Of a DNA stretch of 64,000 nucleotides, positions 37,832 through 59,006 are shown one piece after another. The stretch spans positions 62,001 to 126,000 of the forward strand of contig JBLWGC010000140.1 of the NCBI GenBank assembly GCA_048772705.1, read 5' to 3'. The notes under the pieces are model-generated. The model saw only the letters and a program-made list of their open reading frames with translations. It did not search any database and was not told the origin of the DNA. How positions within the stretch are numbered: position 1 is the stretch's first letter; the number at the start of each line of letters is the position of its first letter. Origin of the DNA: Leidyana gryllorum EB-2025a. Its lineage: Eukaryota > Protista > Apicomplexa. A program made the position numbers and the translations under genes.

Positions 37832-37863
37832 ATCGCCACAGATAGCTTATGTGCAGTAGCATT

Positions 37864-37964
37864 GTGCACGGATAACATTGATTGAACATTGCACGCCGCT
37901 GTGCACGGTTAACATTGATTGAACATTGCACGCCGCTGTGCACGTTAGTCTTTGAACATTGTCA
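37864..37964. repeat. 37-bp tandem repeat x ~2.7 containing GTGCAC
   Basis: gtgcacgg(a/t)taacattgattgaacattgcacgccgct. Confidence 0.9.
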
Positions 37965-38018: not shown

Positions 38019-38471
38019 TCAGTGGCCGTCTCGACGCTTGCGCGCGTTGATATGGTCGAGATAGCGCTTGTGCTCCACATTCGCGTAGTCCATAATGGTT
38101 CGTGTCAGATCTCCGTCTCCGAGGGTCATTTTGATCGCTTCCCGTACGTCTCTGACGCCAAAGAGTTCGCGATCATTCGCCAGACAACTCGCTTTGGTGT
38201 TGAGCACAACTCGCTCGAAGAAATCAACTACCATTGTATTGAGCAAATCAGCGGCATCTTCTTGGAGGGTGACTGAATTGTCAATTACTTCCAGACAGCC
38301 CTGAATAGCTTTGTGATGTGACTCGAACTTTAGTCTTTGGAAACGTGCGACTCGCATTTCTCGGCGGTCGTGCAGCATAGTGTTACGGCGCTTGCTGCTG
38401 GAGGCTTTGCGTACTGAGACGTCATTGGTATTTCCAGACTTTGCTGTTCGTTGACCACTTCGACCAACCAT
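38019..38471 (-). CDS. Highly divergent histone H2B-like protein
   Basis: Near-gapless by-eye alignment to the H2B fold: ESHHKAIQGCLEVIDNSVTLQEDAADLLNTMVVDFFERVV...NDRELFGVRDVREAIKMTLGDGDLTR vs [40 protein letters not shown]...[25 protein letters not shown]. Confidence 0.8.
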   Translation of the reverse strand: MVGRSGQRTAKSGNTNDVSVRKASSSKRRNTMLHDRREMRVARFQRLKFESHHKAIQGCLEVIDNSVTLQEDAADLLNTMVVDFFERVVLNTKASCLANDRELFGVRDVREAIKMTLGDGDLTRTIMDYANVEHKRYLDHINARKRRDGH

Positions 38472-38491
38472 TTTGGCGTATAACAAGAAAT

Positions 38492-38964
38492 CTACGGATC
38501 AATTTTGCGTCGCAAAGCTAATACCCAGGGCTCCCGTTTCCACGTCATAAAGTTCTCCCAACCACCCGCGACAAACGGACCCAAGCCACACCTGATGAAC
38601 TCTGACTCTGTCAACAACGGGACGACCCATTCCCCAGTTGCGGACGTCAAGTTCTGCTTATGTCGGCAAATATCGTAATACTTTTCCATCGCCACAGCAT
38701 CCAGAGCGATGAACTTGTAGGCGTACCCGGTCTCGCGCACTGCACATTGCACAAGTGTTAATTGCAGACTCAATTTGAGTGTGCGCACAGACATGATCAC
38801 AGCGCGCAAAAGAGATGTGCACAGTGATCAAGCCCAGGCAGTAGGTCTGACTCACCTTGAAATTCCTCAGTCAGATAGGACTCGGTAGCGGGTCCTGTGG
38901 CCTTGACTTTGAGTAGAGGGCTGCGCCACTTGGCCGAGACGATAGCATCTGGACGTTGATTCAT
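38492..38964 (-). CDS. CKS (cyclin-dependent kinase regulatory subunit)-like protein, one intron
   Basis: GYAYKFIAL...PLLTESEFIRCGLG...GGWENFMTWKREPWVLALRR resembles CKS YEYRHV..LMSEEEWR.LG...GWVHYM.HEPEPHILLFRR. Confidence 0.7.
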
Positions 38965-38989
38965 GTGTCGGCTACTATATATGTCTATA

Positions 38990-41900
38990 TCACACCCCGG
39001 TTGAAATTATAAGGGGTGTCTGTCTCCGAGGCTGTCCACTGGTACTACTCTGTCCGCCTCCGGCGGCACCACCACCACCTGTTATGTTATTAGCTGCCAA
39101 TACCCCCTCAAGTTCTTTCAACCAGTATTCTTGCTGTTCCAGTCTTTGGTTGACGAGCTCGACGAGCTGGTCTGCGATGGGCCGGATCCAATGCTTTTCG
39201 GGATTGTAAGCGAAACAGTTGTCGTGAATCAATTGAATATCCTTCTTGAATTGCTCCACTGTAACGTACTGCGATTTAAATGGAATTACGTTTTGAAGCC
39301 GCGCCGCAATCCGCCCCTCTTACCATTCGCTCCTTGGACTTCTCGGCTATGCGCTGCAGCCACATGGGCTCTTTGATCACCTGATAGTACCGGGGGGCCT
39401 CAGCCTCTTTGACGGGATCCCAGAAGGCGGCAAACTTCCTTTCGGGCCGTTTGAGCGATAAGACTATCCGAGCCAAATTCTGGTTCAGCTCGTCCAATGC
39501 CATCTCAGCCGGGCCCAAAAACTTGACCAGCGAACTGGTGAGCGGCTGTCCAGCGGCCTCGGCCTCTTTGTGCTTCTCATAGAGCAGTCTCTGTTGCCGC
39601 GCTGTCAGCCGCACCGCCGTCACCGGCAGACCGCCGCGCAGCTCTGCACTCTTCCCAGCCGCCGCAGCGGCCAGTAGAGCCGTCTCCTGATCCTCAGCCC
39701 CCGAGTCACTCGGCAGGTCACCCGCTCCACCGGCGGTTCCGCCCTTCGTACTCGACACTCCCAAAGCACTGCCGCCCTTTTTGTTCCCGGGACAGTTGGG
39801 GTTGCTGCTGATGTGTCCAGCCTTCCCGCACCGGCGACAAGTTCTCCCTGGGAGGTTGGAGCGATTTCCACCGCCTCCACCGGCGCCGCCGGATCCCTGT
39901 TTCGTAGCAGAGCGCTTTTCAATTAGCCGTCGACGTCTCCACGCGATAAACTTCTCGATATTCTGCTCTCCATATATATACACCACCTTTTCCATCGGCC
40001 CAGCGCCATTGGGGTTCGATCGCACCCGACTCCACCGTAACCGAGGCACCGCCATTCCCTGTTTTGATTTGAGGAAATCCCTCAGCTGTTTGTCTCCAAT
40101 GCTCCCAATCCATTTATTCGCTGTGGTGTGTAACGAAGGAGACTGTAATGGGTAAACGCCGGGGTACCGAGCCTGATGATCACTGAGCGTCTTACTCGCG
40201 ACCTCCCACTCCACCATCTCCCACTTCATCAACTCTCCCAATATAGTCTGATCCTTCTCCAAATCCCCCCAAATCGTCTCCTTTAACGCCTCACTCACAT
40301 CGTGGCCCGGTGGAGGCGCATTAGGCACCGCTAACACACCGCCGCCGCCAACGGCTCCAGATGACATCATTCCACTCGTCACACTCTCACCACCGATCGA
40401 ACTCGACGCATCGCCTCCGGCCAAACTGCTGTCACCGTCCAACTGGTCCAAAAACGAAGCCTCCAGAGCCGCTTCGTCCATCTTGGGGTGTAACGCGTCC
40501 TCAAACACATCAGTAATGTCGGCGTGACCCGGCGCTGCTTTCACGTCGTCAGGTGTAAAGGCACATCGCTGCTTCATTTGGATCTCATTTATCCGTGTCA
40601 CGTAGTCCCCCGTCTCTATCCGGTTAATCTGACTCGTCAGACTCTGTAAACTTCGCATCGGTAAAGCCATAAACTGCATACGGTAATACAGATTCACCAA
40701 CTCCTGACGCGTCATCCTCCACAGTACTGTCGCCGGGATACCCGCCTGTAACAGAGCTATCTGCAGCTGAGCAGTCCCGAGCTGGTCACCCCGATCCCGT
40801 ACGGCTTCCTCAAATACCACCGGCGGATACTCCTGGTCAGACTGATGGTGATGATGGTGCGAGTGATGACCCATCATCGGGGGCCTCGGGCCCCGGCCGT
40901 GACGACCACCACTTCCAGCAGTGCCATTCAGAATGTTCCGAATGTGACGCTGCTGCTCCAACAAACCGTCACGCGATGCATTGGTGGCCACATCTTCCTT
41001 GAGAAAACACAGCCCTTCCATCCGTCCCAGACTAAAGTCAAAGGTGCTCCCCAACAAGAACTGACTGTTCTTCTTGGCCGTCACCTCGGCATACGCCCGT
41101 TGCTGCGTCCACGGCGCCATAAACACCAATTCCTCCACAACGCGCGCGATCGCACTCAAAGATGCATTCAAATGAGGCTGAGACCCGTGGAAAGGTAATG
41201 GCAACTGCAGAACCTTTGGAATCGTATTCACTCGATTGTCTGTCATCTGCTGATACGCTCGCCATTCAGCCCGAGCTTTAGACCATAACCAGTTGCTGTA
41301 CTGATCGCGGATATATAACATATATCGCGCCACACTCAGACGGTCAAAGTTTTTCAAATACTTCAGTCCGGCCCAGTTCAGTTGCGCTTGACCGACCAAA
41401 GATGCTTCCAGGCCACAAATCTGCTCCGGGGTCACCAATTTGCGGATATTCGCTTCGCTGATCGCACGAATCTGCATACCACCGCCGCCTCCCATCATTG
41501 ACAACCCGATACCGCCGCCGGCTCCAGTAGAACTGCCACCGTGATGTCCGCTGCCGCCCGTCTTCTTCAGACCCAAAAGGAACCGATTAATGGTATTGGG
41601 ATCAAAATGCACTCCGAACTTTGATGAGCACTTCTGCTTGTTGGCGTTGAAATCTGTAATGCCCTGACTGGCCAGCCGTAAGGAATACGCTTTCAGCCAT
41701 TCCTTCCGAATCTCAGACACCTTCTTGCCATCGGGGGGAGGGATTTCTGCCAATAATTCGCATTGCCCTAACGTATACACACCAACGCGGGCGTAATTGT
41801 CCATATTTTCCACCACGTCCTCCGAAGGCATCCCATACAGACCGCGCTCGAGTGCGGGAGGTGGACTGGTAGCGACATTCGGGTTCTGTTGATTGTTGCC

Positions 41901-44900
41901 GCTGTGAGCGTTCTGATCAACGATCAAACCGTGGAACAGTGGCCGCAATGTGAGCTGTTAGAGACAAATGGAGTCTGATTCGTCCCACACATACAGCACA
42001 GCTCACCTTAACCTGAGGATTATTGGATGTGACATTCTGCGTTGTGCGGATTAACAAAAAGTCGGTCAGACGGAAGTCGTCTTGGTGATCTAACGTATGC
42101 CACCCCTGACGAGCGGACAACGGGGGTTTACACTGATTCAGTGTCTCGATGTAGGAGTCAGGGGTCGGTAACGGCCTCCGTGGATCAAACGGATGAGCAA
42201 AACAGGGACCCTTTACCAAACTTGACAGGTAAAAAGTGACGCCCTGGTTGGGCTTCACACGGAACGGCGACCCAAAAGCTGTCAACACAGTGTCGCCCAG
42301 CAGCTGAAGCCGTCCAAAGTGCCCCAAACGCCCACGTAACTTCCTCTCGGCTTGACTTAGCGCACTAAAGTTCTCCCGCGATGGTCGATAGAAACGTGTG
42401 ATTCGTCCCATCATGCCGTAGTTCGACACCAACAGGGTTGGATTTGTGTGCTCAAAGAGTGCCATAGGTACCCACTCCGCCAGACTTAATGTCCGCGGAT
42501 TAGTGAACAGCTCTGATGGGTGCTCCTGTTCCTCAGGTTGGGAGTTCTCTCCGTTTTCGTTTTGAGCCGCAGCGTTACCGAATGCCAGACGGGTACGATA
42601 TGTTTCCAATATGGTGGAAATACTAGGAGCACTGCGGATTCAGGCATCAATCATCCAGGATCTGAGCAAATAAACACTTACCAAACACGCCAAGGGCCGC
42701 CGAACAGCTGCTGAGAATTCGACAGCTTCGAATCCTTCTTACTGGTGGTAACAGTCTCAGTTCCAGCCGTTGTTCCACCACCAACCATACTTCCACCTGC
42801 AGCGCCTCCCAGACTGTTGGAGCCGAATGATCGACCGCCCGTGAAATCGAATGGTCGATTCCGTCCGACCCCCATACCGCTTACAATACTGCCACTTGCC
42901 ACAGTTCCAGGACGATTCATCTGTTGTTTGCGGGCATTATAGGCAATTCCTGCGGCACTGCTCAACATGGCGTTCTGACCAGCAAACGCGGTTTTGTACA
43001 CCACAAAGTAGTGCGCAGCAAATATGCCGGTTCGGAAGTCGGGCCGGTGGTACCGGGCCAATTGCGATGGCGACGGACGGCCAGGAATCGAATAGAAGGA
43101 CCAGGCCACCGGAGAGTGGACTTCTTGAACTTGCACTTGTCCGTGTTCGCGGTGTGTGTTCGATCGCGCGACGGGCCTATAGGGGTCCTGATCAGCATAC
43201 TGAGCGTCACTGGCTACTTGTAGCCATGACAAAGCGACATCAATAGCTGCGTCCCTCTTGCTGTAGCCATTCAGCTCCCGAAAGCCGAGCGGATCGACTA
43301 GGCGAGTATTGTTCGTCAGCCATCGACTGATCTCAGCCGACATGCCGTTGGTGTTTGGGGGCAGTAGGCGCCAGCGGAAGTTTGTGGGAATTTGCTGCAC
43401 CATGGCTTGTTGCGCTTGATCGATGGTCATGGCGCTGTTAGCATGTGTGGCCAAACTGAATGCATTGGATCCCGTGGCAGGGTTGTGGGGCTGTTGACTC
43501 CGGGTAGGAAAGTTTGATGAAGCCAAGCGGTTCTGGTGATGCTGACTTGAAGCATTCAATATTCCCGTTGGACTGTTGCCTTTTTGAGTGGGACTTCCGT
43601 CGCTTTTGTCGTTATTCTTCTGCGCCAAGGTTTCCACCCAGCCACGCCAGAGAGCATAGGCAAGAAGTTTATCCTCGACGGCCTGTCTGACGATGGCTGG
43701 CAGCATCTGGTGTCCTCCATGTCCGGGGCTATCGCGGTGTCTTGAACGTCCCCTAAACTCATCAGCACGTTTGGCCAAGAGTCGGATACTCATTGGCATT
43801 TCAGCTCCAAACATAAAGTTGTCGCTGGCGGATGGCTGCGAGAGGGGATGAAAGAGGCATTGAGAGGGGCGACAGAGTCTTACCGTAGGCTGAAAGTCAC
43901 GTGCGGGGAGTACATTGAGATCGGCTGTGAAGGCCGCCAGGATAGCAGCACTGGGCTGCATGAGTTTGTGGACATTGATGCGTCTTGGATAGGGGTTTGA
44001 AGGTGTGGCGAGATTATGGGGGCCTTCAACGGGTTCTGAGATCTCATATCTGAGGATACTGAGTGATCTTTCCATGGCCACGACATCTTTGAGTCGATGT
44101 CCGATGCTGTCGACCAATTCTTTGGCCTCGGGGAGGACAGGTCTGAGTTGGAAGAGTTGGAGTCGTCCGATGGTATCTCTGGTTTGGAAGACTTTGGGCT
44201 GCGACGGAAAGTCCCAACTGAGTATATTATCAAAGGTGGCTTCTCTGGCGGCGGTGGCCTTGAGGACTTGAGCTTCTTTGCGGGCTTGGAAGTATTGGGC
44301 GTCATTCATCAGGGCTGAGGGGGGGGCACCTCTGACCTCACCCCACATGACAGTGCTGCTGGGTGGGAGTTCCTCGAGGTTTTCTTCGACGTCAGAGGCA
44401 GTTTCCTGTGTGTGGTGGCGCATCTTTCGGCGTGTGGGGGCGGCAGCGGCGGCAGCTGAGGATTGGGCAGCAGTGAAGGGGGTGACCATGGAGTCGTCCA
44501 CGTCCATGGAGAAGGCGGAGGAGTCGAAGGGTCTGTTGGTGGCACTGGCTGCGGAGGCGGTGGCATTGGGAGGTAAGTTGTGATCGGTGGTGGTCAAAGG
44601 TTGTGAGGTGCTCTGGAGGGCGTTGGACGCAGCTGAGACGTTTGACTGCGCGCTGCTGAACAGCATAGCGTCTTCATCGACTTCGTGGTCGAAGCGCGCA
44701 AAGTTGGTGGCCGCGTCGGGAGCCGAGGCCGTGATGCCATCGTTGTCTGCTGCGAGGTTATTGGCCCCGGTGACATAGTCTGGAGGGTCCATTCCGTCGT
44801 CTCCAAAGTCTTCGTCATCCAACATATCGTACTGAGGGTCGTAGCCCCAGTCTTGTTCTGGTTGCATAGCGATGAGTTCCTCGAGGGTGGGTACCTGGAC

Positions 44901-45836
44901 GGTCTCTGCGAGTTCTTTGTCTGTCAACAGGTCGTCTAAGCGAAGCATTTCTTCGAGACTGCAGGCGGCAGCCGAGCGTGTTTGAGTCTCTTCCTCGACA
45001 GTTTGTCCAGGACTGGGAATGACAGTTTCGTATTCTCGATCCCAATGTATACCCGAGTCATCGTTCTCAGCCTCGACGACGGAAGAGGACCCCCCCCCTC
45101 CGTCTCGATCTTCAGCAGCTATGCGACGATTCGGAGGAGTTGACGGTATGACTATTTCCCCGGCGTCATTGATGTCCTCGTCTAAGGGCGGGGTGGGGTT
45201 CTCGACCTCTACGGGCTCCTCCTGAACGAGGAGCGTATCCTCAATTTTGCTGACTTCCACAGCTGTGACGGCTTGCGGAGTAGCCGCCGAGACCACACTG
45301 GAGGACCGCTCGCCATCGTTCGCCGCCAGCGAGTGCTCCGCTGGCCACTCTTCGTCCTCCTCCTCCCCTGCAGCAGCCATCAGGGTCGTCGACGACGACG
45401 GGTCGTCCAACCGTCGCTTCTTCATATACGCTGTGGACGTCAATTGTCACAATGGCACCGCTCGCTGTCGGTCTCACCTATACTCTCTGGCGGCAGAGAT
45501 AACCATTGGGCCTCTCGGAGGGTTTCTTGGAATCGTGACAATATTGCTGATACATTGAGACTCCGTTGGGGGTCGGGAGGAGGCGGTATCACGTCATCGT
45601 GGGGTAAGAAGACCGGTAACTCGGGGTATAACAGCTGAGAGACAGACAAATGGACAGCGGACAGTAATCAATCCTTACAGCGGGAGGCGCCCAGTCAAAG
45701 CTTCCGACCGGTATATCAATAGCTTCTCGGCGTCGAGGCCGTTTACGCGTCAAACATATTCCCTCTGTTACAATGACTTATTGAGGAATTCATTAAATTG
45801 ACACACATTACCTTCCCCACCGTCCGATGCCGCCAT
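38990..45836 (-). CDS. TAF1: TFIID subunit TAF1-like (DUF3591 core, zinc knuckle, C-terminal bromodomain), multi-exon
   Basis: LARYHRP, SNYGMMGRITRFYR, TDFLLIR, TPEQIC..E; CRRCGKAGHISSNPNCP; bromodomain FWDPVK..AP.YY.VIKEPM...IHDNCFAYN. Confidence 0.85.
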
Positions 45837-45881
45837 TTTGGGTCCAAAAAGACTATCTATCCATCTATCCATCTGATCACC

Positions 45882-47030
45882 TCATCCGCAGTACACGACC
45901 TTAACAAGCCACTTTCAGCCGCGAGCCCACACACAAACACTCACCCACTCAAGTGCACCTCGCCCTTCACTTCAGCCACCGATATTAACCACTCCAAATC
46001 AACTCCAACTGCCGCTCAATACCAACAAATCACACAAACACACTTACTTCCTTTGGCGCTCAATACCTCCCGCAGCCGTCTCGACCTCGCCTCTTTGAAC
46101 TTGAGACGGTTCAAAGTCGCCTTCAGCCATCGCATACCCACCCGAACCTGATGTATCAACACACTCACACCCGGAACACTCAGCCGCCTCTGTCCCACGA
46201 GCACCTGAGCCCTAACCAATAATTGCTCCAACTGCTTTGCATAGCTCTCATTCTCAAACAGCCTCGGAAACGACGCCTTTGCACTTCCACCCTTCAGACA
46301 CAAATCATACGGACTCTCCTCCAATCGCTCTTTGATCCCACATATCAATCCCTCCAACAACTCGTCCGGTATCAACCGATCCTCCAATGGAATCAACAAC
46401 TCGCCCTCGTCCTCGCCACTCCGGCCCCGCTTCCGCTTACGTTGACACATCTCCCGGTGAACTCGCCGCAAACCGCTCTCCCACCGCCGACTCAACAACT
46501 CCCGAACCGTCAGCACCACCAACGGCGGCTCCGTCCCAACGCTCGTCTGCACCACAATGCGAGACGCAGGAAACACCTCTTCCAGAACTGACACCCTCCT
46601 CAATACCACACACACACACACACTCATCGGCTCACTCACAGTACTCAACCTCTCTTCGATCCAACTTGGCAACGCTCACAGCCCTCCGAACCAAATAGTT
46701 CCGCGGTACCAACGGCACCCGAGTCGCTTCGTACACAACACTCCTTTCCTTCTCCCCCTCTCTTCCGCCGATGACCCCTGCCGCGGCCGCCGCCGCTGAC
46801 TCACTTTCCTCCTCTCCGCCTGGGGGGACCACCACGACTTCTGTCCACCCGGCCGCATCGTTGTTACTCGGCTTCCTGGCCGCTTCCGGCCGCCTCTCCT
46901 TGTAGGACAGCTCCAACAGACATTCCTGAAAGCACTTTACGAATGCCTCGAGCCCCGCACCGCCGCGGCCGCTCTCCACCAATGGTCTCAATATAGTACT
47001 GAGATGAGTTTCCAGTTGCTCCACTGTCAT
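45882..47030 (-). CDS. STK19-like winged-helix protein (multi-exon)
   Basis: VPLVPRNYL...; LSVPGVSVLIHQVRVGMRWLKATLNRLKFKEA resembles STK19 LAVPGAGRFIK...GR..VL.MVRKAKYRE. Confidence 0.55.
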
Positions 47031-47055
47031 GCACAACAAACATAAATAACAAAGA

Positions 47056-50000
47056 TCACACCTTCTCCTCTGCTCCAGTGTACGCAGACAAAAGCTTCAA
47101 ACACGGGCAGCCCGCCGGTCTCGATCCATCACACAGTCGACACCCAACACTACGGGATCCCAACCCTCCACTGCTCTCTTTGAAGAAATCCACTGCAGGC
47201 GGAGGCGGTGGCGCCTGAAAACTCTTTCCTCGTCCAATCGTTGGCCGCAAACCCTCCATCAACCGCTTCCCTATCTGCTGCTGCTGATGCTGTGGATGCT
47301 GCTGTTGATGCTGCTGATGCTGTTGATGTCCACCCGAGTATCTTCGCTGCTGCTGCTGCTCGCCACGCTTCACAAACACAAAAGGCCCACACTCCCCCTT
47401 AGACACATCCTCACCACCCCCAACACTCTCAGACGGTCTCACTAACAATAGGAATGCGTCCCTTTCGTGTGTCTGTAGAATGTTTGATGCTGAACTCAAC
47501 GATGGAGAGTGCTCTATGGGAGCCAAGAAAGATCCGCCGCCTCCATTGCTCCCTTCCCAACGGGACAGAGGGGGCGCCGGCAACCGATTGATCTCCTTTA
47601 TCGGGGGACCCGGGAACTCTATCAGCCAAGATGGGTCGGGACAGTGATAAAAGGTCACCAAAACCAATGGGCCCACTGTCGAGGCTCTGAATGATGAATA
47701 CGTCGCCAAACTGCTGGGATCCGGGCCCACTGCCATTCGCACCGGCTGTAAACAAAACCAATGCGACCCTCGCCGATCTGTCAATGACGGACAAATGACT
47801 TCGTTCTCTTTGCTCGCACTCAAACGGTGCTGCCCAATGAAATTCACAATGTCCTTCAACCCCTCCGCGGTCAAAACTCGATCCGCACTCGCGTTTCGGG
47901 TACGCACCAACACCCACGCCCACACTCCTCGCAGACACGCCGGAAACGGTAAACCTCTGCCACCACCGCTCTCTTCTCGCTGAAACGGACCTCTCGCCAA
48001 ACTCGCAGCCATTATACCCAGTGACATGTAACCGACCACACGACAGATTGTCGCCAGCTGCTGATGAATAAATCGATTGTGTTCAGCTTTGCTGCGATCT
48101 GCGTAACGCCTCAGTAATAAACAAAACATCTTCAACAATCGCTCTCGAGCCACCTCAAAGCCACACTGATGCGGACCATTCGCAGTCGCAAAGTCCCAAT
48201 GAAACAGAGCGCCCAAATATTGATACATCCTCACCAACCGACGCTCCAATGGATGAACCAATGAACTCAACAAGAACAGAAACTCCGGAACCATATCAGT
48301 CACATGAATGATCGCCTCCGTGGGCCACTCTGCGTCCACCTCCAATGCCTTTTCGGTCCACGGGTCCAACTCAAACCACTGATCCCAAACCACATTAACC
48401 ACAAACCGCCGCAAACACGCGAACCTGTCGTCCTCCGGTAACGGTAACAGCGTCAATATGTTCTCGCCACCCGTCTTGTTCTCCTGCCACCTGTCCAACA
48501 TTCGAGTCCATTGTGCCAACACAAACTGATCCACCACAGACGCAGCCGCAGTACCGCCGCCGCTCACACTTCCACCATATCGATACGCTTTCCGGTCGGC
48601 CACAGTCACTCGAGGGACCCGAAACGGAGTCTCCAGAAAGTCATCCACCATCACTGTCTCCCCAATACCTTTGCCCAACTCGACTGAAATATACAGAACG
48701 TTGCTGCCGAGGACGACGCCCTCTCGCTCAGTAGGGGCCGCCGCCCTGCCTGACGCCTGCTGCTGCATCAACCTGTACTGTGTCTCCTGAGCCTTCGACC
48801 GGTTAGAAACTGAGGCACCCGGTGCCATGCCGTGCGTCTTTTGACCGGGAGGGAACATCGAGCTGACTTTGGTAGTAATAGATCGCAACTTGGACTGACG
48901 AGATGAGGTCGTCATCTCACCGCCAGACACTCCTGTCGCCGGGCCAGCAGGCTGATCGCCCGTGCCCCCTTCGCCATGATGAGGTAATCTGACAGGCTGG
49001 AAATTGCTGCCGAGTTCAGAGTTCTCACTGCCCGGAATGATCTCAGCTCTCCCACGGGTAGAAGGCTCGCAAACGCTCGAACGTGAGCCAGGAGACCGGT
49101 TGCCATTGGCTCCACTGCGCGTTTCTGCATTGTCTTCAGCAGGATGACGTCGTCGAAAGATCGGAAGAGACCGCGGAACGTCGTCATCTCCATTTCCTCC
49201 CACACTTGAAGAAGGCAACAGTGCCACACTCTCTCGCACAGCTGCCATCGAGCCACCGCCAGTGGACCCAACTTTCTCAATGCCATTGTCCAATGCACCC
49301 CCTTCGCCTCCACTGCCGCCACCGCCACCTGCCTCGCTGACAAATCGGACTCTCGTTCCAGTACTCTGAGTGGGATCCTCAGCCAAACAACGGCTCGATG
49401 TCTTCCTGTGTGAAGCGCTTTGGCTGACGGGCGGGTCAAGAGGCCGTCTGGTGTGCGATTGAGGCTGACTGGCGGCTTTCCGGGAAGCGAAAGGCGGAGA
49501 ACAATTGCCGTTTGTAGACCAATTGGGGTGTGGTATGTGGGTCGGATTCATATCGTTGCTGTGACTCCCATACATAGAGTCCTCTCTGCGAGCAGCTATC
49601 CGTCCGGTAGACAGAGTTTGTCCCGGCGGCACTGGAAGGTCCGGTGGCAATTGGATAACTCTTCGAGTAACGCGTGGTGGGGTTTGGCCCAACAAAGGCA
49701 AGTTGACACGTGGTGTGTGCTGTTCATCAGTTCCACCTGACTTCCGGGACTGCTGACGTGATAAGCTGGCGGGAACAGGAGGACCGCCGATCCCAGGCGG
49801 AGGGGTCCGACTGCTGCACATATCAGGTGGCGAGATACCTGTCCCACCACCGCCACTCTGCGGTCTGTGTCTCACTTCCTCAATGCGGTCAGGCACCTGA
49901 CGGGCTTTGGGAGGCGGGGTGCGGACAGGAACACCTCGAGAACCTGACGGAGGCCGAGGTGGCAGTTGACTCTCTGCGCCACGCGAGGAGGTGGGACGGG

Positions 50001-53000
50001 GAGGCACCATGGAAGCTCGTCGAGCAACTTGCGGTAGAGGGGTACTCGGACTCACAGCCGGAGGTCCATGAGGTGGTGAGATCGGGGGGGGCCCGAGGGT
50101 GGGAGGCTCAACATTCGTTGACCGTCCAGACGCACCACCACGGCAGGACCGGAATGCCGATCGACTGCAACTGTCAACAGTGAAGGGATCAGCGGGTGGT
50201 TGATACATTAGTGGTCTTTCCACCGAAGTATTGCACCGTAATGGGAGTGTCATGCTGGGGCTGGCGTTGTAGACGCTGGGCGACAGAGCTCCGCTCCAAT
50301 GCACCGTTTGGGATGGTATAACATCAGCCGACCTGTCGCCATCTGCTCGGTCAAAGTGCCACTGCCGAGATGGTGGATCGCCACTGGCGTCCAGCCGCTG
50401 CAAATTGCGCACGTGGACCGATGTTTCCACTCGGCGTTTAACCAGCGGCAAGGCTGAACAAGATGGGCCGGCAGTGGCGGCCAGATCGTCTCTGAGAGGG
50501 AAAGGGAACATGTGCCCCGGCCCAACGGTCATTTGTCGATGTAAAATTGGAATCTTGTTGTGATTGTCTTTGACGGTGGGTAGTTGATGGCCGACCGGGC
50601 CTGGAGAGGTGACGCATCGCTCGTGAGATCGATCCACTGGCAGAACTTGCGGCCTGATGTTGGACACTCGTGAAGCTGTCATTTCACCCAAGAACTCTGT
50701 CGTCTGGTTCTCGGCGACCCGAGGCAACACAGAATGCCGCGCAGCACTCGGCTTGGCTCCGGGAGGACCAGACGCCCCCCAGGCCTGCAGGTGCGAGGAC
50801 GGTATCCCAAGAGGTCCCGGCTTTCCATCATGTCCTGGCTGACGACTCATCACGGCGCTGACGGGGTTGGTAGTTGGAACACTCCCGTCGTCCGGTTTTG
50901 TGAATCTGTTGCGATCCATCAAGCTCTGCACTTTGGACGGCGGCACCTTATCATCTGGGCCATACGCGATCATACGATTATTGATGCACAATAACTTTTG
51001 ATCATCTGTAATGGGAGGTTGACTCGGCATCTTCCCCACTTGGGACAGCAGGACTGGAAGAAAGATCAAACCGTGACTGATACCAAAGATAATGACCAGC
51101 ATAAGCATTTTGAAGAAAAGCCGAAAGATGAACGATTGACTGTGCCCAAGAACCATGATGCCAACAATGGTGGAGGCAGCGCCGTGGAAGACTGGTGTGC
51201 CCATCAAGACAACACACTCCGTTGCTCGTAGGTTCCGAGTTCGGCCTATGCAGTGACTGAAGGTGTGACAAATGTGAGCACTGTAATCGATAGAGAAACC
51301 GATGGAAATGACCAATGTAATCATGCTAATCATATTGAGTTTCACGCCCCAGTAGTGCATGAACCCCATGACAGCCACATCAATCAACGTCATGACAAAT
51401 ATGACCAATATGCCACTCGATATCTCAGGAATCAGAATCAGAGCCACAACTAACATACTGATAGTCGCAGTCGTCAGCGAACTGATAACACTGCTCATAA
51501 TCTGCAAATCAGATTCGTAGAAAACCATCATATAGTTCCACGCAATCGCTTTCAATCCACTTGGTTTGTCGCTGCGACGATTTCCACCCGATGGTGGGTC
51601 AACTCTGGAGAGGTAAGCTGCAGGATCATTGAACATCGGACCCGATTTCGGGCGCAGCACACGTGTGCGAACGCTCTGTAATTTTGGTGGTAAGTCAGGG
51701 ACTCTGCTCTCGATGCCCCAGTGGTCCGACACCATCTTTATATCAGTGAAGAAGTCCTTGATTGACTCGGCTTCCTCCGGTGACAGATTGTTGTGATCCT
51801 TCTTTTGATCTTCACCGGGGAAGAGCTTATTCTTCAGCCGCCGGATAACTCCAGGCTTGGGTCCCGTCTTTGGCAATTCTATCCACCGGCCGTCCTCAGT
51901 GGTGGCCAATGAATTGATCTCTTCTATATCACCACGAATTGTCCGCATCCACTGGGCACGTTCCTCTGATGTAGCCATACCGCGGGGCAATAATGTGATC
52001 TTCCAACTGATGAGTTTGTCTCCGTTCCAACTGAAATCCTTCTCAAATTGCTTATATTTAGACCCTCGCACAGAAACGGCGTCTCGCAGCGCTGTCAAGA
52101 AGGTATCTTCATCACCTGAGAGTAAATAAGGCGACAATTCTGGGTCCTCTAACATCCTGAGCATGGGATTGTTCATAAAGACTGTCGATTCTCTCGACTT
52201 GAGCCTCTCATCTAACATGTAGAGTAGTCGGAGTGTTTTGTGATCCCACCATCGTACTTCCCGGTCACCAAAGAAGACGTACACGGGAATATCGAATTGG
52301 CCAAAGTACTGTGCATTCAGATTGTCATAGACCTTCAAATATGATGTATCCGGACTGAGGTCTTTCAACTCCAGTCCCTGCTCGACGTGGGCTATACCAT
52401 AGACCGCAAAGCCAAAGATGATGGCGAAGGCCAGGAACACCAAGAACTTGATATGTGGTTGAAGGAGCCATTTGCAGTAGTAGGAACCGAAGAATGATCT
52501 CCAACTCCTTCCTACGTTCCCAGGAGGCTCGTTGATGAAGCTCGGGTGTTTTGAGGCAATCACAAGACTTCGCAGATCCCTGTTATCTCCCTTCTCGAGG
52601 TAACTCCAGGTAGATTCATTGCGCCTAGCCGGCTCTGAGTTGGGAAAATCTGGCAGTACCACGGCACTCGCAGTGTTGATTGGGACTATCGCGCCCTCTG
52701 TATTGCCTCTAACAGTTCCCTCGGTCACATCAGGGGTCTGGGTGGTCGGCATGGCCGTATGAGGATTCCATTTCAGTTTCCCACTGGCGATCTGCTCAGC
52801 AAGGTATACAGGTGGGTTTGCATTGGCGACCCAAACAACGCCATGTGAGAGCATCATCTGGTAGATAGGATGGGACTTCATCTGACCTAAGGTGAGCATT
52901 CCCGTTGTTTCGGCCATTCGGAATATGGGATCATTCGGAGTCGGTGGGTAGACCCAGTTGCCACTCTGCGTTATCCAGCTCCCCAGTCGCGAGCAGAAAG

Positions 53001-55686
53001 ACATTCGGATCCACTCCTCGCGATTGAAGACCACCGGTGCATAACGGGGATCCAGAACCCAATTGCGGCCCACCTGGTAGCTGACGAGTTCAAAGACGGT
53101 GAGTCGAGACTCCTTGAAGAGGCTGGCCATGATTTGAGCCACAGGGTCCGGAACTGACTGTGTGTTGACCGGGAAGGGGCCAACCGCAAAACTCGTGCGT
53201 TCAGGAACGGGAGTGCCCAGAAAGGCTGATGTGGGGGCGTAGGGAGAAGCGCTCAAATTGGGTATATGACGGAAAGTGGTAACATTGGGTTGTCCATCGG
53301 GCTCCATACTGTAGAAGCGAACAATGCGTTGTTGACGAGCTGACATTGCAATCCCAGATTCACTGTCTATGACCGCCAGACTCGGTCCTCCGCCGCGAGT
53401 ATTGGGAGAATAGCCTCCCAAGGGGAAAGGGGTCCCGTAGTTGCTGGTTTCAGCACACCCGGGACTGTTGTGGATCGGTCCTTCCAATCTGCTGCGAGAG
53501 GCCGAGCGAACAACGGCCTCGGCCAGCTTGAGTCGCTGTACAGCGTTCTGTTTCCGCATCAAGTGCTTCTCCTCCTGCGTGTTGAAGCTGAAACACGATT
53601 GTCTCAGGGCTTCACGTTTCGCGTCCATGCAGACGACGGCCAGGAAGACTGTGAGCTCAAAGAACAGAGAGAAGGCGAGGCCATTCAAGCTGAACAAACA
53701 GAAGTTCCGAATGGAGACGTAGGGCGACTGACATCCGACGCCAAAGGCAATAAGGTTTGTGGCAGTAGTCAAAATGACACTGACACCACAATCTCTCAGA
53801 GTCACACGACACCTCTCTCGTGGTGACCTTTCGCAGTACGCAAGGGAATAGCAATTGATAATGACAAAAATATCATCACAACCGACACCCATAACGAGGA
53901 AAGGAGTGACCAGAGCGGTCGGAACGAATGAGACCTTCATCATCGAAGTGTAGCCAAGACCAGCCGCGACGCCGAAGAGGGACGCCAGAGATCCGGCCAG
54001 AGCACTGATAGCCTTATTTCTGTAGAGGTCCATACTGAAGTTGATGGCCGCAGTGTAACTGATGACAAAGATGAATGTAAAGACGACGAAGATGACATCC
54101 TGAGATTCACTGGTGGATCGACGTAACTCATCATCACGACTTTTGAACGCGTTGACTCCAACCCTTAAACCTCTGTAGTGGCCTCCAGCTTCATTAAAGA
54201 TATCGTAGAAAGTGCTCATCCAAGCAATATTAGGGACAAGAAATTCATCTCGGTCATCCAATTCGTAGATAAAGTGCATCGCCTTCACTTCCTTCACACA
54301 CTCCAAGTCCACAGAGCTCAATGTGGGATTGCTCCCGGGCCCCAATTGCTCGGGAGGATAAAAGAGGGCAGCCAAACGGGTCGGCAACTCACGCCGACAT
54401 CGCTCTGTTCTCATGCCCCCCAGGACGTACTCGGGAACAAAACCCTTCTTCTCCTTATTGAATATATTGCCTCCCAATATATACAATTCTGGTGGACCCT
54501 CATCTCCAATGAGTGCTTTCATTTCCATAACGCCCATCTCAAAGATTGATATCACTGAGCACACATCAAAGGGTCCCATAGCGCAAATGTCTTCGTAGGT
54601 GATCACCGCCTCGTAGTTGTCTTCAACTGGAAACTCGTCGCCCTTCACCAACAATGTGTTGTTGACCTTCCAGGGACCAGCGCTATCGCTGCTGACTAGT
54701 TGTTGATAAGAAGGATTCAAGTCGGAATCTGTCTTTCGAGTCTTCTTTCTGGACCCGGATAATGAACCGTCTAAGGATTTCAGCCGCTCCGTCGCTATCT
54801 CCCACAGTTCCTGTGTTGACAACCCTTTGATCGCGGAACCCTTGTTGTGAGCCGCTGGCGTCGTTGTGGGAGCTTGAGTTGGACGTCCGAAACTAACAGC
54901 GCTCTGGTCCTTGAAGCTAGATGCATTCGGGGGTTCAACCAAAGCAGCTTCTTGAACATCACGTTTCCGACGTCCAGCTGCCAGCATCTGGGGGTGGAGT
55001 CGAGATCGGAACCCAGGAGTGAGTTGTAGAGCAAGGCGTCGGCCAGTTTCAGGTTCCACCAATCGGCCGCGAACAATTTTGTCCAATTCAGCTATACGAT
55101 CAAGATCTTCCCAAGTGAATATATTGCGCCCGGGTGGGTCGGACGTGACTATCATAAAGTTGGCCAAAGATAAGGAATCGGAGAACAGACTATTATGTAC
55201 CAGACCATCATTTTTCGCTTGAGTGTGGGGAAGTGCATAAAGATTTTCGGCACCATCGAGCCAAGTAGCAATACCGGGAATAAATCCAATAACACTGAGA
55301 AGAGCAACAATGCATCCAATTGTGAATGCTAAGACGGAGTGGTCGAAACACCAGACGGCCCAACGACCACACAATTCACCGATCTTCGACACAAAATCCT
55401 CTTTGAACTGGTTGACCTCATGAGCAATGGCTCTGATACCCTGCCGAGGCTTCTCGAAGCTTGTGTCAGTCAGAGGTGGTAGGTTTCGAGCAGGCGCTCG
55501 TGTGTGCACACGCGTCTCGTTGTAGGTAGGCAGTGGCAGAGGCATTGGTGTGCTCGAGCTGACACGCTCAGAAGCCGTCGCGGAGGATGAGATGATGCGC
55601 CCTGTCGGTCGGGGCACATTGGAAGTGGGTTCACTGTCGCTGTATATAGGTATGCCATTTAAGTTGCCAGGTGCCTGTGGCGGCAT
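47056..55686 (-). CDS. NPC1/Patched-family (RND) sterol-sensing membrane protein, NCR1-like, with a very long C-terminal extension; intronless 2876 aa
   Basis: SSD: PFLVMGVGCDDIFVI, GVSVILTTATNLIAFGVG; second half: SIGFSIDYSAHI, GTPVFHGAASTIVG, GLIFLPVLLS. Confidence 0.9.
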   Translation of the reverse strand: MPPQAPGNLNGIPIYSDSEPTSNVPRPTGRIISSSATASERVSSSTPMPLPLPTYNETRVHTRAPARNLPPLTDTSFEKPRQGIRAIAHEVNQFKEDFVSKIGELCGRWAVWCFDHSVLAFTIGCIVALLSVIGFIPGIATWLDGAENLYALPHTQAKNDGLVHNSLFSDSLSLANFMIVTSDPPGRNIFTWEDLDRIAELDKIVRGRLVEPETGRRLALQLTPGFRSRLHPQMLAAGRRKRDVQEAALVEPPNASSFKDQSAVSFGRPTQAPTTTPAAHNKGSAIKGLSTQELWEIATERLKSLDGSLSGSRKKTRKTDSDLNPSYQQLVSSDSAGPWKVNNTLLVKGDEFPVEDNYEAVITYEDICAMGPFDVCSVISIFEMGVMEMKALIGDEGPPELYILGGNIFNKEKKGFVPEYVLGGMRTERCRRELPTRLAALFYPPEQLGPGSNPTLSSVDLECVKEVKAMHFIYELDDRDEFLVPNIAWMSTFYDIFNEAGGHYRGLRVGVNAFKSRDDELRRSTSESQDVIFVVFTFIFVISYTAAINFSMDLYRNKAISALAGSLASLFGVAAGLGYTSMMKVSFVPTALVTPFLVMGVGCDDIFVIINCYSLAYCERSPRERCRVTLRDCGVSVILTTATNLIAFGVGCQSPYVSIRNFCLFSLNGLAFSLFFELTVFLAVVCMDAKREALRQSCFSFNTQEEKHLMRKQNAVQRLKLAEAVVRSASRSRLEGPIHNSPGCAETSNYGTPFPLGGYSPNTRGGGPSLAVIDSESGIAMSARQQRIVRFYSMEPDGQPNVTTFRHIPNLSASPYAPTSAFLGTPVPERTSFAVGPFPVNTQSVPDPVAQIMASLFKESRLTVFELVSYQVGRNWVLDPRYAPVVFNREEWIRMSFCSRLGSWITQSGNWVYPPTPNDPIFRMAETTGMLTLGQMKSHPIYQMMLSHGVVWVANANPPVYLAEQIASGKLKWNPHTAMPTTQTPDVTEGTVRGNTEGAIVPINTASAVVLPDFPNSEPARRNESTWSYLEKGDNRDLRSLVIASKHPSFINEPPGNVGRSWRSFFGSYYCKWLLQPHIKFLVFLAFAIIFGFAVYGIAHVEQGLELKDLSPDTSYLKVYDNLNAQYFGQFDIPVYVFFGDREVRWWDHKTLRLLYMLDERLKSRESTVFMNNPMLRMLEDPELSPYLLSGDEDTFLTALRDAVSVRGSKYKQFEKDFSWNGDKLISWKITLLPRGMATSEERAQWMRTIRGDIEEINSLATTEDGRWIELPKTGPKPGVIRRLKNKLFPGEDQKKDHNNLSPEEAESIKDFFTDIKMVSDHWGIESRVPDLPPKLQSVRTRVLRPKSGPMFNDPAAYLSRVDPPSGGNRRSDKPSGLKAIAWNYMMVFYESDLQIMSSVISSLTTATISMLVVALILIPEISSGILVIFVMTLIDVAVMGFMHYWGVKLNMISMITLVISIGFSIDYSAHICHTFSHCIGRTRNLRATECVVLMGTPVFHGAASTIVGIMVLGHSQSFIFRLFFKMLMLVIIFGISHGLIFLPVLLSQVGKMPSQPPITDDQKLLCINNRMIAYGPDDKVPPSKVQSLMDRNRFTKPDDGSVPTTNPVSAVMSRQPGHDGKPGPLGIPSSHLQAWGASGPPGAKPSAARHSVLPRVAENQTTEFLGEMTASRVSNIRPQVLPVDRSHERCVTSPGPVGHQLPTVKDNHNKIPILHRQMTVGPGHMFPFPLRDDLAATAGPSCSALPLVKRRVETSVHVRNLQRLDASGDPPSRQWHFDRADGDRSADVIPSQTVHWSGALSPSVYNASPSMTLPLRCNTSVERPLMYQPPADPFTVDSCSRSAFRSCRGGASGRSTNVEPPTLGPPPISPPHGPPAVSPSTPLPQVARRASMVPPRPTSSRGAESQLPPRPPSGSRGVPVRTPPPKARQVPDRIEEVRHRPQSGGGGTGISPPDMCSSRTPPPGIGGPPVPASLSRQQSRKSGGTDEQHTPRVNLPLLGQTPPRVTRRVIQLPPDLPVPPGQTLSTGRIAARREDSMYGSHSNDMNPTHIPHPNWSTNGNCSPPFASRKAASQPQSHTRRPLDPPVSQSASHRKTSSRCLAEDPTQSTGTRVRFVSEAGGGGGSGGEGGALDNGIEKVGSTGGGSMAAVRESVALLPSSSVGGNGDDDVPRSLPIFRRRHPAEDNAETRSGANGNRSPGSRSSVCEPSTRGRAEIIPGSENSELGSNFQPVRLPHHGEGGTGDQPAGPATGVSGGEMTTSSRQSKLRSITTKVSSMFPPGQKTHGMAPGASVSNRSKAQETQYRLMQQQASGRAAAPTEREGVVLGSNVLYISVELGKGIGETVMVDDFLETPFRVPRVTVADRKAYRYGGSVSGGGTAAASVVDQFVLAQWTRMLDRWQENKTGGENILTLLPLPEDDRFACLRRFVVNVVWDQWFELDPWTEKALEVDAEWPTEAIIHVTDMVPEFLFLLSSLVHPLERRLVRMYQYLGALFHWDFATANGPHQCGFEVARERLLKMFCLLLRRYADRSKAEHNRFIHQQLATICRVVGYMSLGIMAASLARGPFQREESGGGRGLPFPACLRGVWAWVLVRTRNASADRVLTAEGLKDIVNFIGQHRLSASKENEVICPSLTDRRGSHWFCLQPVRMAVGPDPSSLATYSSFRASTVGPLVLVTFYHCPDPSWLIEFPGPPIKEINRLPAPPLSRWEGSNGGGGSFLAPIEHSPSLSSASNILQTHERDAFLLLVRPSESVGGGEDVSKGECGPFVFVKRGEQQQQRRYSGGHQQHQQHQQQHPQHQQQQIGKRLMEGLRPTIGRGKSFQAPPPPPAVDFFKESSGGLGSRSVGCRLCDGSRPAGCPCLKLLSAYTGAEEKV

Positions 55687-55701
55687 GACCGAAGGCGAAG
55701 G

Positions 55702-57581
55702 TCACTGAATTCGCTTGAGCTGCAGGATATAGCGGGATCCCTTATCACCTCGTGTCCACAGCCTAGAACAAAGTCCACAAGGCTGAAAAACCACACATAC
55801 CTGTCGAAGAAGCTCTCAGCCTGGCCCACTTTATCGTCTTCTTGCAGCGATCTATAGTGCCAGGGGAAGTCTTCTGTGAGACATTTCCACACTTTACCCT
55901 CTTCCTCGACGTCCCGCTTCTGTGAAACAGCTCCACACAATGGCTTTACAACAACTCCACTAATATAACTCATAAATTGCTTCTGATCAGATATGATCCA
56001 GAAAGACCCATCAACAGTCAGACGGCTGCATGGGACATGTTAAGAATGTATGGGAGCGAAGCTCCATTACCTGTGAACAAGGTCGAACAGCTTGGGTCCT
56101 ATCCAAGCATCCGGGGCATCTTTGACATGTGGTGGTTCAGGAAAATTAATCCAAACGTCCTTCAGACTTGCCTCGGGTACAACAGACTCCAACAGAGTGG
56201 TCCCGTCACCGCCAATGAGGAAAAGGTTATCCAAAGCTGCCCCGGCCTTAGCTTTTGCAGAGAGAATTTCAGCACACCGATTCCACCGCAATTCATTCAC
56301 GATCAGAATCTCCGAAGGGTGGCTGGAAGCGTAAGAAACAGCCCAGTGTCCAGAGCCGGCACCCATCTCCACCACAATAGCCTTCTCTTCGCTTTGAGCC
56401 TTCTCGAAAGGGGCATTCACTCGACTCACTACTGCCTTGAGCGCCTTGATCACTTTCTTATCACTCAAGGGAAAGCTGCTTAGTTCCTCAAAGGTCGGTG
56501 GCTGGGCTCGCGGGGTGATGCCCAGCAGGTCGACATCGCCTTTCCCCTTCTCTAAAGACCGCAAAGCCGCTTTGAAGACGCTCGGACTACTCCGACAGCC
56601 AAAGGCCAATGCGGCAGTGTGGCTGTCAAAATGCTCCGCCCACTCGGAGATGTTTGGTATTGACGTCGGGGAGATGTAAAGCAAACCCTCTCCCTCTAAA
56701 TCTGCGCACTGTCCATTGTTTAATTCCCTTCGCAGCTCTTCCGCTTGATGTTGCTGGAACAATCGACGCGAATCGGCTGCACTTGAAGGCCCGTCCTCGC
56801 CGTTGCACTCCTCGCCATCTTCATTGTCGTCCTTTGTAGCGCCCTGCTGGAGCTTACTGAGCAACTTTTGCGCTCGCGAGCGATATTTGTGCGCAGCTTC
56901 TGCCGGAAGGTGTGTGGCCAACAGCACACACGCGCGCGCTTTCGCCATTTGACTGATGGCAATGGGCTCATGTTCGCTTCTCTGATCCGTGAATCCAGTG
57001 GAATCCCGGTTCCACAGCGTTTCGGCCTGTTTCGCACAGCCCACACGGCATAGCATATCCACGATGGTGCTGAGAGAAGTCAGGTCGACAGAGTGGGCCC
57101 GATCCACAGCCGAATAGACTCGCAGCGCTTCCAGGATGGCTCCTAATCTCTGGCATCCCCGAAGGAAAGCATTGACGATGCGTGAATTCGGTTTGCCTTT
57201 GGTCTGCAACCAGCTTTGGGATAATTGGTCATATGCCTCCTTGAGCTTGAGCTCATTCGTGAAGCCTTTGACGAGAGCAGATTGGATAGCAGCGGTGGTA
57301 TGGGAAGCAATCTTTGCATACTGACGATCCATAAGCCTCTTGAAGTAGAGTCCTTTGACTGTTTGACCGGCTTTGGCGCAGGCATTGATCATCTGCACAT
57401 AACTGGTATCATTGGGTTGATGGCCGTTGGAGCGAATGGAGTGGAAAGCTGCTAAGGCATCTCCCAATCGTCTCCGGCGGCTAAAGTCGCCAATAGCGGC
57501 ATTGATTTCTCCCAATGACTTCTTGGTACGTTTGAAAGAGGTGTCTTCCGCCTCCTGGGGTGGTGGGGCTCGTTTGGCCAT
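55702..57581 (-). CDS. PPR-repeat protein fused to a TrmB-like tRNA (guanine-N7) methyltransferase (PPR-TGM type), two introns near 3' end
   Basis: PPRs (INAAIGDFSR..A...F..I...G.QPNDTSYVQMINACAKAG; SALVKGF; VNAFLRGC; STIVDMLCRVG); TrmB motifs VVEMGAGSG, NELR, INFPEPP, IISD. Confidence 0.85.
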
Positions 57582-57601
57582 GCTTTTTTTTGACCTCCAT
57601 A

Positions 57602-59006
57602 ATGGGGGAAATCATTGATCTGGACGACTCTGACGATGAAGTGACAGCCTGGCCAGAGTGCCAGAATGTGCCTCCCGGTTTCTGGGACCCGGTTGTACCG
57701 CAATCCGCGGTGGCGAATGATGCCGCGGCAACTGATCCAACAGCGAGTGACCCACTACCTGCGCTGGCCGGCCACGATGAGCTGCCACCGGGTTTCTGGG
57801 AGGACGAGGCTTTGAGTCCGAAGCCGACGAGCGTTGAGGCTGCCGCAGTCTTCCCTGATGTCACTCAACTCTTTCAAGAGTTCGACATGAACTTCTTTGA
57901 TGGTCAACTCACTCGCTTCGGCGTCCAGCTCGAGTGGTCGAAGAAAATGACCAGTTGCGCTGGAATTTGTTACTGGAAGCCGCGACCGACCAAACAGGAG
58001 GTCCAGGCGGCTTCTCGTAAGCAGCCGGACGGCGGTGTTGAGCTTCTGCTATCAACTTTTCCCAAGTGTGTCGTTAGACTATCGGAACCCCTATTGACAC
58101 TCCGCCCAGTGAGCGATCTCAAGGAGACATTGGCACACGAAATGATCCACGCCTATTGTTTCGTCAACAAAATCGAGCAAGATAGGGGTCATGGGCCTAA
58201 CTTTGTCCGTTTGATGAATATTATCAACGCACACACGGGGATGCATATAACTGTTTATCATACTTTCCATGATGAAGTCCGATACTTCCAGAAGCACGTC
58301 TGGAGATGTCAGGTGAGCCACGGCCACATACCGATCCGATAGACAATTTTCCCTCACACAGGGCCCCTGCCGCCTCACCCCCCCTTATTTTGGCTATGTC
58401 CGACGAGCAACCAACAGGGCCCCGGGCCCCTCGAGCTACTGGTGTAAGTGGTGGTCGCCGCCGCCTCTCTCAATCGCTTTCGTCGCAGGGGAACGCCATC
58501 AACGCGAATGTGGAGGACAGTATATCAAAATTGAAGGCCCCGATCTCACAGCAAAGAAGCCAACCGATCGCGAAAAGTCTACAAATACCCAAACCCTCAT
58601 AACTGCTGTATTCGCGTCCAATACATCCAAAGGGAAGACCTCTTTGTTGCCGGCCAAAGGTAACAATCGAAGACTCTCTTTACTATATGACACGCAGAAA
58701 TGCCCCATCGATGATGACCAGAACGTCACCAGCGCTCTGATGTCTACCAACCCTCATCAACCTTCGCCACCACCACCACCCGCTGTCAAAAAGAGGATAG
58801 CGCTACGCAAACGGAAGTTCGATGACACTACGGCTCTCCAGAGCTCAACCTCCACTGAAAAATCCTCACCTCCCAAGAAGATCAGAAGTGGGGAAGAGGG
58901 GTCGCCTGGGTCGCCGGGAGATAAAACCGTCTTTATTGGCCTCGGAGACAAGCTGAAAGCTCGCCAGGGCCGACCCACCACCCTCCAGCCGTTCGCTGGC
59001 GACTGA
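57602..59006 (+). CDS. SPRTN: SprT-like DNA-dependent metalloprotease (Spartan), multi-exon
   Basis: FFDGQL...EWSKKMTSCAGIC; RLSEPLLTLRP..LKETLAHEMIHAY; HGPNF; ITVYHTFHDEV; HVWRC; C-terminal SHP-like PFAG. Confidence 0.92.

Follow-up and report, generated by a model that had tools for sequence, protein, structure and literature searches.

The locus described here raises the question of how six genes that follow one another on a single strand, with barely any DNA between the stop codon of one and the start codon of the next, are transcribed. It lies within a stretch of 64,000 nt (the window) of contig JBLWGC010000140.1 (C140) of the gregarine Leidyana gryllorum and occupies 19.5 kb of the minus strand. 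In the preliminary description it was taken for an operon-like array, giving rise either to polycistronic mRNAs or to monocistronic transcripts that overlap extensively. The array and the gene at its head are listed below in window coordinates, with the basis of each assignment in brackets; L030 and L033 are loci of two related gregarines.

57602..59006, plus strand: SprT-like (SPRTN) gene (Pfam SprT-like at residues 88-220; gene-finder model)
57582..57601, no strand: head-to-head spacer, 20 nt, with a T8 run at 57584-57591 (sequence)
55702..57581, minus strand: PPR-TGM gene (PPR + TrmB), 598 aa; exons 57581-56071, 56025-55801 and 55762-55702, the last uncertain (Pfam, spliced model)
55687..55701, minus strand: PPR-TGM/NCR1 spacer, 15 nt, in frame; least secure junction (spliced models)
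47056..55686, minus strand: NCR1/Patched-family transporter, single ORF of 2876 aa with a 1300-aa tail (Pfam)
47031..47055, minus strand: NCR1/STK19 spacer, 25 nt, T-rich (sequence)
45857..47030, minus strand: STK19-like gene; exons 47030-46640, 46587-46048, 46008-45945 and 45911 (or 45899)-45857 (Pfam, gene finder, spliced model; relatives L030 and L033)
45837..45856, minus strand: STK19/TAF1 spacer, 20 nt, with a T5 run at 45846-45850 (sequence)
38990..45836, minus strand: TAF1, 7-8 exons, about 2170 aa (Pfam, homologues, spliced model)
38965..38989, minus strand: TAF1/CKS spacer, 25 nt, A/T-rich (sequence)
38492..38964, minus strand: CKS-like gene, 118 aa; exons 38964-38856 and 38739-38492 (Pfam, L030 orthologue)
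38472..38491, minus strand: CKS/H2B spacer, 20 nt (sequence)
38019..38471, minus strand: divergent histone-fold (H2B-like) gene, 150 aa (weak Pfam match, gene finder, L030 orthologue)

Gene models, start codons and spacers

The six co-oriented genes are real, as evidenced by Pfam searches run exon by exon, by spliced models free of internal stops, and by GT-AG introns. The searches matched PPR and the TrmB methyltransferase, Patched/sterol-sensing NCR1, TAF1 with DUF3591 and a bromodomain, and CKS, with weak matches for Stk19 (E 0.007) and for the histone fold of the H2B-like gene. The closest named relatives of TAF1 are those of Gregarina sp. Poly1 and G. niphandrodes; homologue searches with PPR-TrmB and with exon 2 of CKS returned nothing useful, two metagenome scans were blank, and an Rfam search of the window gave no match. 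No common pathway underlies the proposed enrichment of the array in nuclear functions, and two of the six genes encode a membrane lipid transporter and a tRNA methyltransferase.

The 1300-aa tail of NCR1 (window 47056-51000) is unmatched in the L033 orthologue, whose own tail comprises about 550 aa; its last 560 aa look globular, an Atlas search with the tail was blank, and the tail could be a neighbouring gene fused in frame. The H2B-like protein is very divergent, with 22% to its L030 orthologue and 23-24% to two paralogues in the same genome, and this histone-fold protein of 38019-38471 may be either H2B-like or TAF12-like. Behind this gene, 281 nt extend to the stop of a convergent neighbour, and this convergent spacer contains a short direct repeat, about 35 nt long, at window 37840-37960.

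The stop-to-ATG spacers measure 15, 25, 20, 25 and 20 nt, in agreement with the values given earlier with the exception of the third, for which 45 nt had been claimed: the STK19-TAF1 spacer is 20 nt, as both candidate last acceptors of STK19 reach the stop ending at 45857. The last acceptor of STK19 scores weakly, and retention of this last intron would lengthen the spacer to about 104 nt; in both relatives, visual inspection shows a last exon of similar appearance. Start codons lying far downstream of those used, a case raised in the preliminary description, are contradicted for PPR, TAF1 and CKS, in which the first ATG is forced, the next methionine of PPR (Met 64) falling within the PPR domain, a conserved motif preceding Met 92 of TAF1, and the CKS domain spanning the intron. 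For STK19, whose next methionine is residue 177, the first ATG is likely correct, and for NCR1 and H2B later starts are possible at Met 48 (141 nt later) and Met 32 (93 nt later), respectively.

Of the five array junctions, four were also obtained with an independent, self-trained gene finder, whereas PPR-TrmB was joined to NCR1 through a 161-nt intron, which makes the 15-nt spacer the least secure of all. The short spacers could accordingly be read as modelling artefacts, PPR-TrmB being spliced into NCR1 or NCR1 and H2B starting at the later methionines, with spacers of 110-160 nt; the preference for the 161-nt intron (acceptor score 3.8 vs 2.1, and a negative coding score for the short last exon of PPR) and the weak STK19 acceptor point in that direction. 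However, the short last exon completes the TrmB domain near its expected length (112 residues for the 94 profile positions that remain), in keeping with the C-terminal TGM domain of the previously described PPR-TGM family (PMC4029402), the starts of TAF1, CKS and PPR are anchored, and equal or shorter spacers occur in relatives. We assign little probability to this reading.

Spacing and sequence signals across the genome sample

Gene spacing was evaluated in a sample of 264 kb (the 64-kb window and a further 200 kb from contig C230), amounting to 1.7% of the 15.5-Mb, 237-contig assembly, with an unvalidated HMM gene finder that was self-trained on that sample without a start-context model and is likely to fuse a number of adjacent tandem genes. 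It converged on a strong donor consensus, introns with a median of 49 nt and 84% coding DNA. Among genes of at least 100 codons, in models whose 54 long introns may hide gene boundaries, the median gap was 52 nt for tandem (n=55), 59 nt for convergent (n=21) and 69 nt for divergent pairs (n=25), with p values of 0.14-0.65; gaps of at most 50 nt made up 27/55, 9/21 and 10/25, respectively, and the classes remained alike upon restriction to long boundary exons (p 0.52). An operon predicts a shortening specific to tandem gaps, and as none is seen, the gaps carry no operon signature. Co-orientation is at chance (55 of 101 pairs tandem, p 0.43; hidden boundaries could lift this to about 63% or more), and strand runs of at least six genes number two, against 1.7-2.4 expected. 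Gaps of at most 25 nt account for 27% of the other tandem gaps, and by our estimate about 0.5 six-gene arrays with such gaps are expected per genome, which places this array only mildly beyond chance. Its five consecutive gaps of at most 25 nt are the tail of the gap distribution, and not a special object.

At the head of the array, the ATG of PPR-TGM lies 20 nt from the divergent ATG of SprT, both starts being forced by domain position (the next methionine of SprT, Met 96, is inside the SprT-like domain). An epimerase/DUF5754 divergent pair, domain-anchored at both starts, is 32 nt apart, and the starts of the Kae1, BUD31, Efg1 and LisH genes are separated by 18-50 nt from the predicted ATG of a divergent neighbour. 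As divergent pairs separated by 20-32 nt must hold promoters, promoters in this genome fit into about 20 nt or lie inside neighbouring genes, and as convergent stops are found 10-25 nt apart, 3' UTRs must overlap the neighbours. The spacer at 57582..57601 is a candidate for a minimal promoter shared by SprT and PPR-TGM. The earlier argument that neither a promoter nor a 5' UTR can be accommodated in the array presumed UTRs of animal-like dimensions: microsporidian 5' UTRs can be shorter than 7 nt, and one head-to-head spacer described there measures 35 bp (PMC2803860).

A T5 or A5 run within 40 nt upstream of the ATG is found at 14 of 55 tandem starts, about a quarter, as compared with 20 of 335 introns (p 4e-5). 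Such runs occur at 23 of 50 divergent starts (two starts per spacer), at 4 of 42 convergent ends and in about 2% of CDS windows, the enrichment of tandem starts over convergent ends being borderline (p 0.06); within the array, two of six starts, those of PPR and TAF1, carry one. The occurrence of both T- and A-runs would suit an element acting at the DNA level, e.g. a nucleosome-poor poly(dA:dT) initiator. The T-rich spacers also resemble polypyrimidine tracts, and trans-splicing is present in the related dinoflagellates and Perkinsus (PMC2868825), so that a polycistronic precursor might be resolved by a spliced leader (SL), in the manner of kinetoplastids or nematodes. Acceptor-like sites, however, are no commoner ahead of tandem ATGs than in CDS (17-18% vs 22%), which upholds the earlier argument against uniform SL trans-splicing; moreover, a G follows the T-runs and no AG intervenes ahead of the ATG, A- and T-runs are equally common, genes are not clustered by strand, and trans-splicing was not found in C. 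parvum. A search for an SL RNA, made with nematode SL1 only and hence a weak test, gave no match. Trans-splicing appears very improbable to us.

CDSs upstream of short junctions show no depletion of ATG (16.4 vs 16.2 per kb); signatures of leaky scanning are lacking. As to poly(A) signals, AATAAA and its variants were detected only in the first 50 nt past stops and none further in, as is expected from A/T-rich spacers. The GC skew at four-fold sites climbs along five of the six array genes, with a plunge of G over C at STK19-TAF1 (Fisher p 0.0008 for one junction out of the five tested) and no drop at NCR1-STK19; genome-wide, a reset at tandem junctions did not reach significance (9/17, p 0.21), and as a mark of transcription units this feature, striking in the array, is only a hint. 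The composition of the minus strand in window 43500-49500 switches near 45,900 from G/T-rich (end of NCR1, STK19) to C/A-rich (early TAF1), and similar switches are seen near window 13,000 and elsewhere.

The genome encodes TBP, a CID-domain protein and two XRN genes, the TBP family being represented by two loci (C169:58694-59314 and C140:162152-162292); a search for the CPSF73-100 C-terminal family gave no match, and its control was likewise blank. Divergent members of the HSP70 family form tandem clusters at C104:1252909-1268878, C2:201839-211179 and C230:1579055-1594793, and the genome contains 40 HSP70 matches. In single-domain searches, the best HSP70 hits belonged to Gregarina niphandrodes and Protomagalhaensia wolfi, at 77%, which together with the TAF1 relatives places the genome among the gregarine apicomplexans.

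Models of transcription and gene order in relatives

In the model that we consider the probable one, the array would represent an extreme sample of genome-wide compaction, with overlapping transcripts and one minimal promoter per gene. Each gene would be served by a separate minimal Pol II promoter, situated at its ATG or immediately before it and in many cases bearing a short poly(dA:dT) run with a putative promoter function, and its 5' UTR would presumably measure between a few and some tens of nt. The 3' UTR and cleavage site of the upstream gene would lie over the next promoter, usually inside the next CDS, and missed 3' processing would yield run-on RNAs with two or more ORFs, of which mainly the 5' ORF would be translated. 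Signals placed inside a neighbour would make rearrangements costly, causing gene order to persist. This overlapping-promoter model is favoured because gaps are alike in all orientations, T/A-runs are enriched and ATGs are not depleted. The same tests fit that half of the preliminary description which envisaged overlapping monocistronic transcripts with promoter elements within upstream CDSs or along their edges, whereas its operon-like polycistronic array does not agree with the equally short gaps of divergent and convergent pairs, with co-orientation and strand runs at chance, or with the absence of ATG depletion.

Four relative loci (L030-L033) were reached through TAF1 homologues, and the gene order is kept in two distant gregarines, L030 (Logan SRR31860986) and L033 (ERR10900107), and absent in G. 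niphandrodes (L032) and L031. In L030, the TAF1 of which is 49% identical, the order is an unknown ORF, STK19, TAF1, CKS and H2B-like, with spacers of -20, 0, -8 and +2 nt, the STK19, TAF1, CKS and H2B-like ORFs abutting or overlapping (L030:802-8133); an alternative start of its TAF1 lies 51 nt later, and its CKS orthologue has a phase-1 intron placed alike. L033 retains NCR1, STK19 and TAF1, with spacers of 73 and about 180 nt, and this variation in spacer length among relatives argues against a fixed coupling distance. Runs are present at three of six starts in L030 (p 0.03) and at two of two in L033 (p 0.003), and the T9 and T6 runs of L030 fall within the preceding CDS, a short way ahead of the STK19 and TAF1 starts, so that the T-run element follows the ATG once the spacer vanishes. 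The conserved order is compatible with co-transcription as well as with the embedding of signals in neighbouring genes, the second of which is the explanation proposed for microsporidian gene order.

Co-transcription may take the form described in Cryptosporidium, in which some junctions would give rise to defined, polyadenylated mRNAs of 2-4 ORFs, driven by the upstream promoter, in addition to internal monocistrons, without trans-splicing. The related C. parvum has 201 such transcripts, involving about 10% of genes (PMC11761812); the conserved order in two relatives agrees with this, and the best candidate dicistron junctions are possibly NCR1-STK19, which lacks both a skew reset and a T5 run, and CKS-H2B. 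On the other hand, 2-4 ORFs fall short of the six over 19.5 kb seen here, and no sequence feature singles out tandem junctions; the scheme differs from the overlapping-promoter model mainly in the abundance and function of the multi-ORF RNA, and we treat it as a tentative and rather unlikely alternative.

A true six-gene operon would go further, with a head promoter, a 19.5-kb precursor, and termination-reinitiation or processing. Five spacers that are all 15-25 nt would suit it, as would the spacers of 0, -8 and +2 nt in L030, which have the appearance expected of stop-restart coupling, and the end of L030 synteny at the 3' end of the array, the LYAR neighbour in L030 being on another contig in L. 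gryllorum. Against this stand gaps no shorter than those of divergent or convergent pairs, no larger promoter at the head, the 141 and 106 internal ATG triplets of NCR1 and TAF1, by which scanning is ruled out, and reinitiation past long ORFs, which is described as very rare (PMC5972666); the wider spacers of L033, the lack of a common pathway and the absence of the order in G. niphandrodes also speak against it. We give the six-gene operon little credence, and it appears similarly improbable that the lineage evolved obligatory polycistronic mRNAs in which stop-restart coupling would serve the translation of downstream ORFs that follow long cellular ones; if this were true, the conserved NCR1-STK19-TAF1-CKS-H2B block would be such a unit.

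Comparison with known compact genomes and implications

The overlapping-promoter model has its closest counterparts in the microsporidia Encephalitozoon cuniculi and Antonospora locustae (PMC2803860, PMC2099475), with which L. gryllorum shares very short spacers in every orientation, head-to-head pairs as close as the 35-bp one found there, a gene order kept despite fast sequence change, and an A/T signal just before the start, here at a minority of starts. In E. cuniculi, overlapping and multigene transcription has been mapped (PMC2803860, PMC2099475), in a cluster with spacers of 77-416 bp, and the spacers of the present array are shorter. Unlike in microsporidia, the genome is 15.5 Mb in size and rich in introns of about 49 nt, and no CCC-like motif was seen. 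C. parvum, a related apicomplexan with a compact genome, shows UTR overlap on both strands and a poly-T motif in open chromatin without trans-splicing (PMC11761812), but its polycistrons of 2-4 ORFs are defined by long reads and have an E2F motif, and the present array has six ORFs over 19.5 kb. The bicistrons of green algae (10.1101/2024.07.24.605010; PMC7896298) likewise have spacers of tens of nt, sometimes with stop/start overlap, and conserved order; in them, however, ORF1 is short and ATG-depleted and the spacer is far below that of ordinary neighbours, none of which is true here. Porospora gigantea (PMC9250747) is a gregarine with the same 84% coding DNA and a GC content of about 54%, but differs in its 9-Mb genome and 28-nt introns.

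No description of transcript boundaries for this gregarine genome was found in the literature searched. The array itself is not special, its spacing being genome-wide, and it extends microsporidian-grade packing to an intron-rich gregarine genome. What is new is a gene order conserved in two distant gregarines, with spacers in one of them down to 0, -8 and +2 nt. With spacers that range over three species from about 180 nt to below zero, the block offers a natural series on the placement of promoters and poly(A) sites, and this series bears on whether the polycistrons of Cryptosporidium represent a trait held in common or have arisen as a by-product of compaction.
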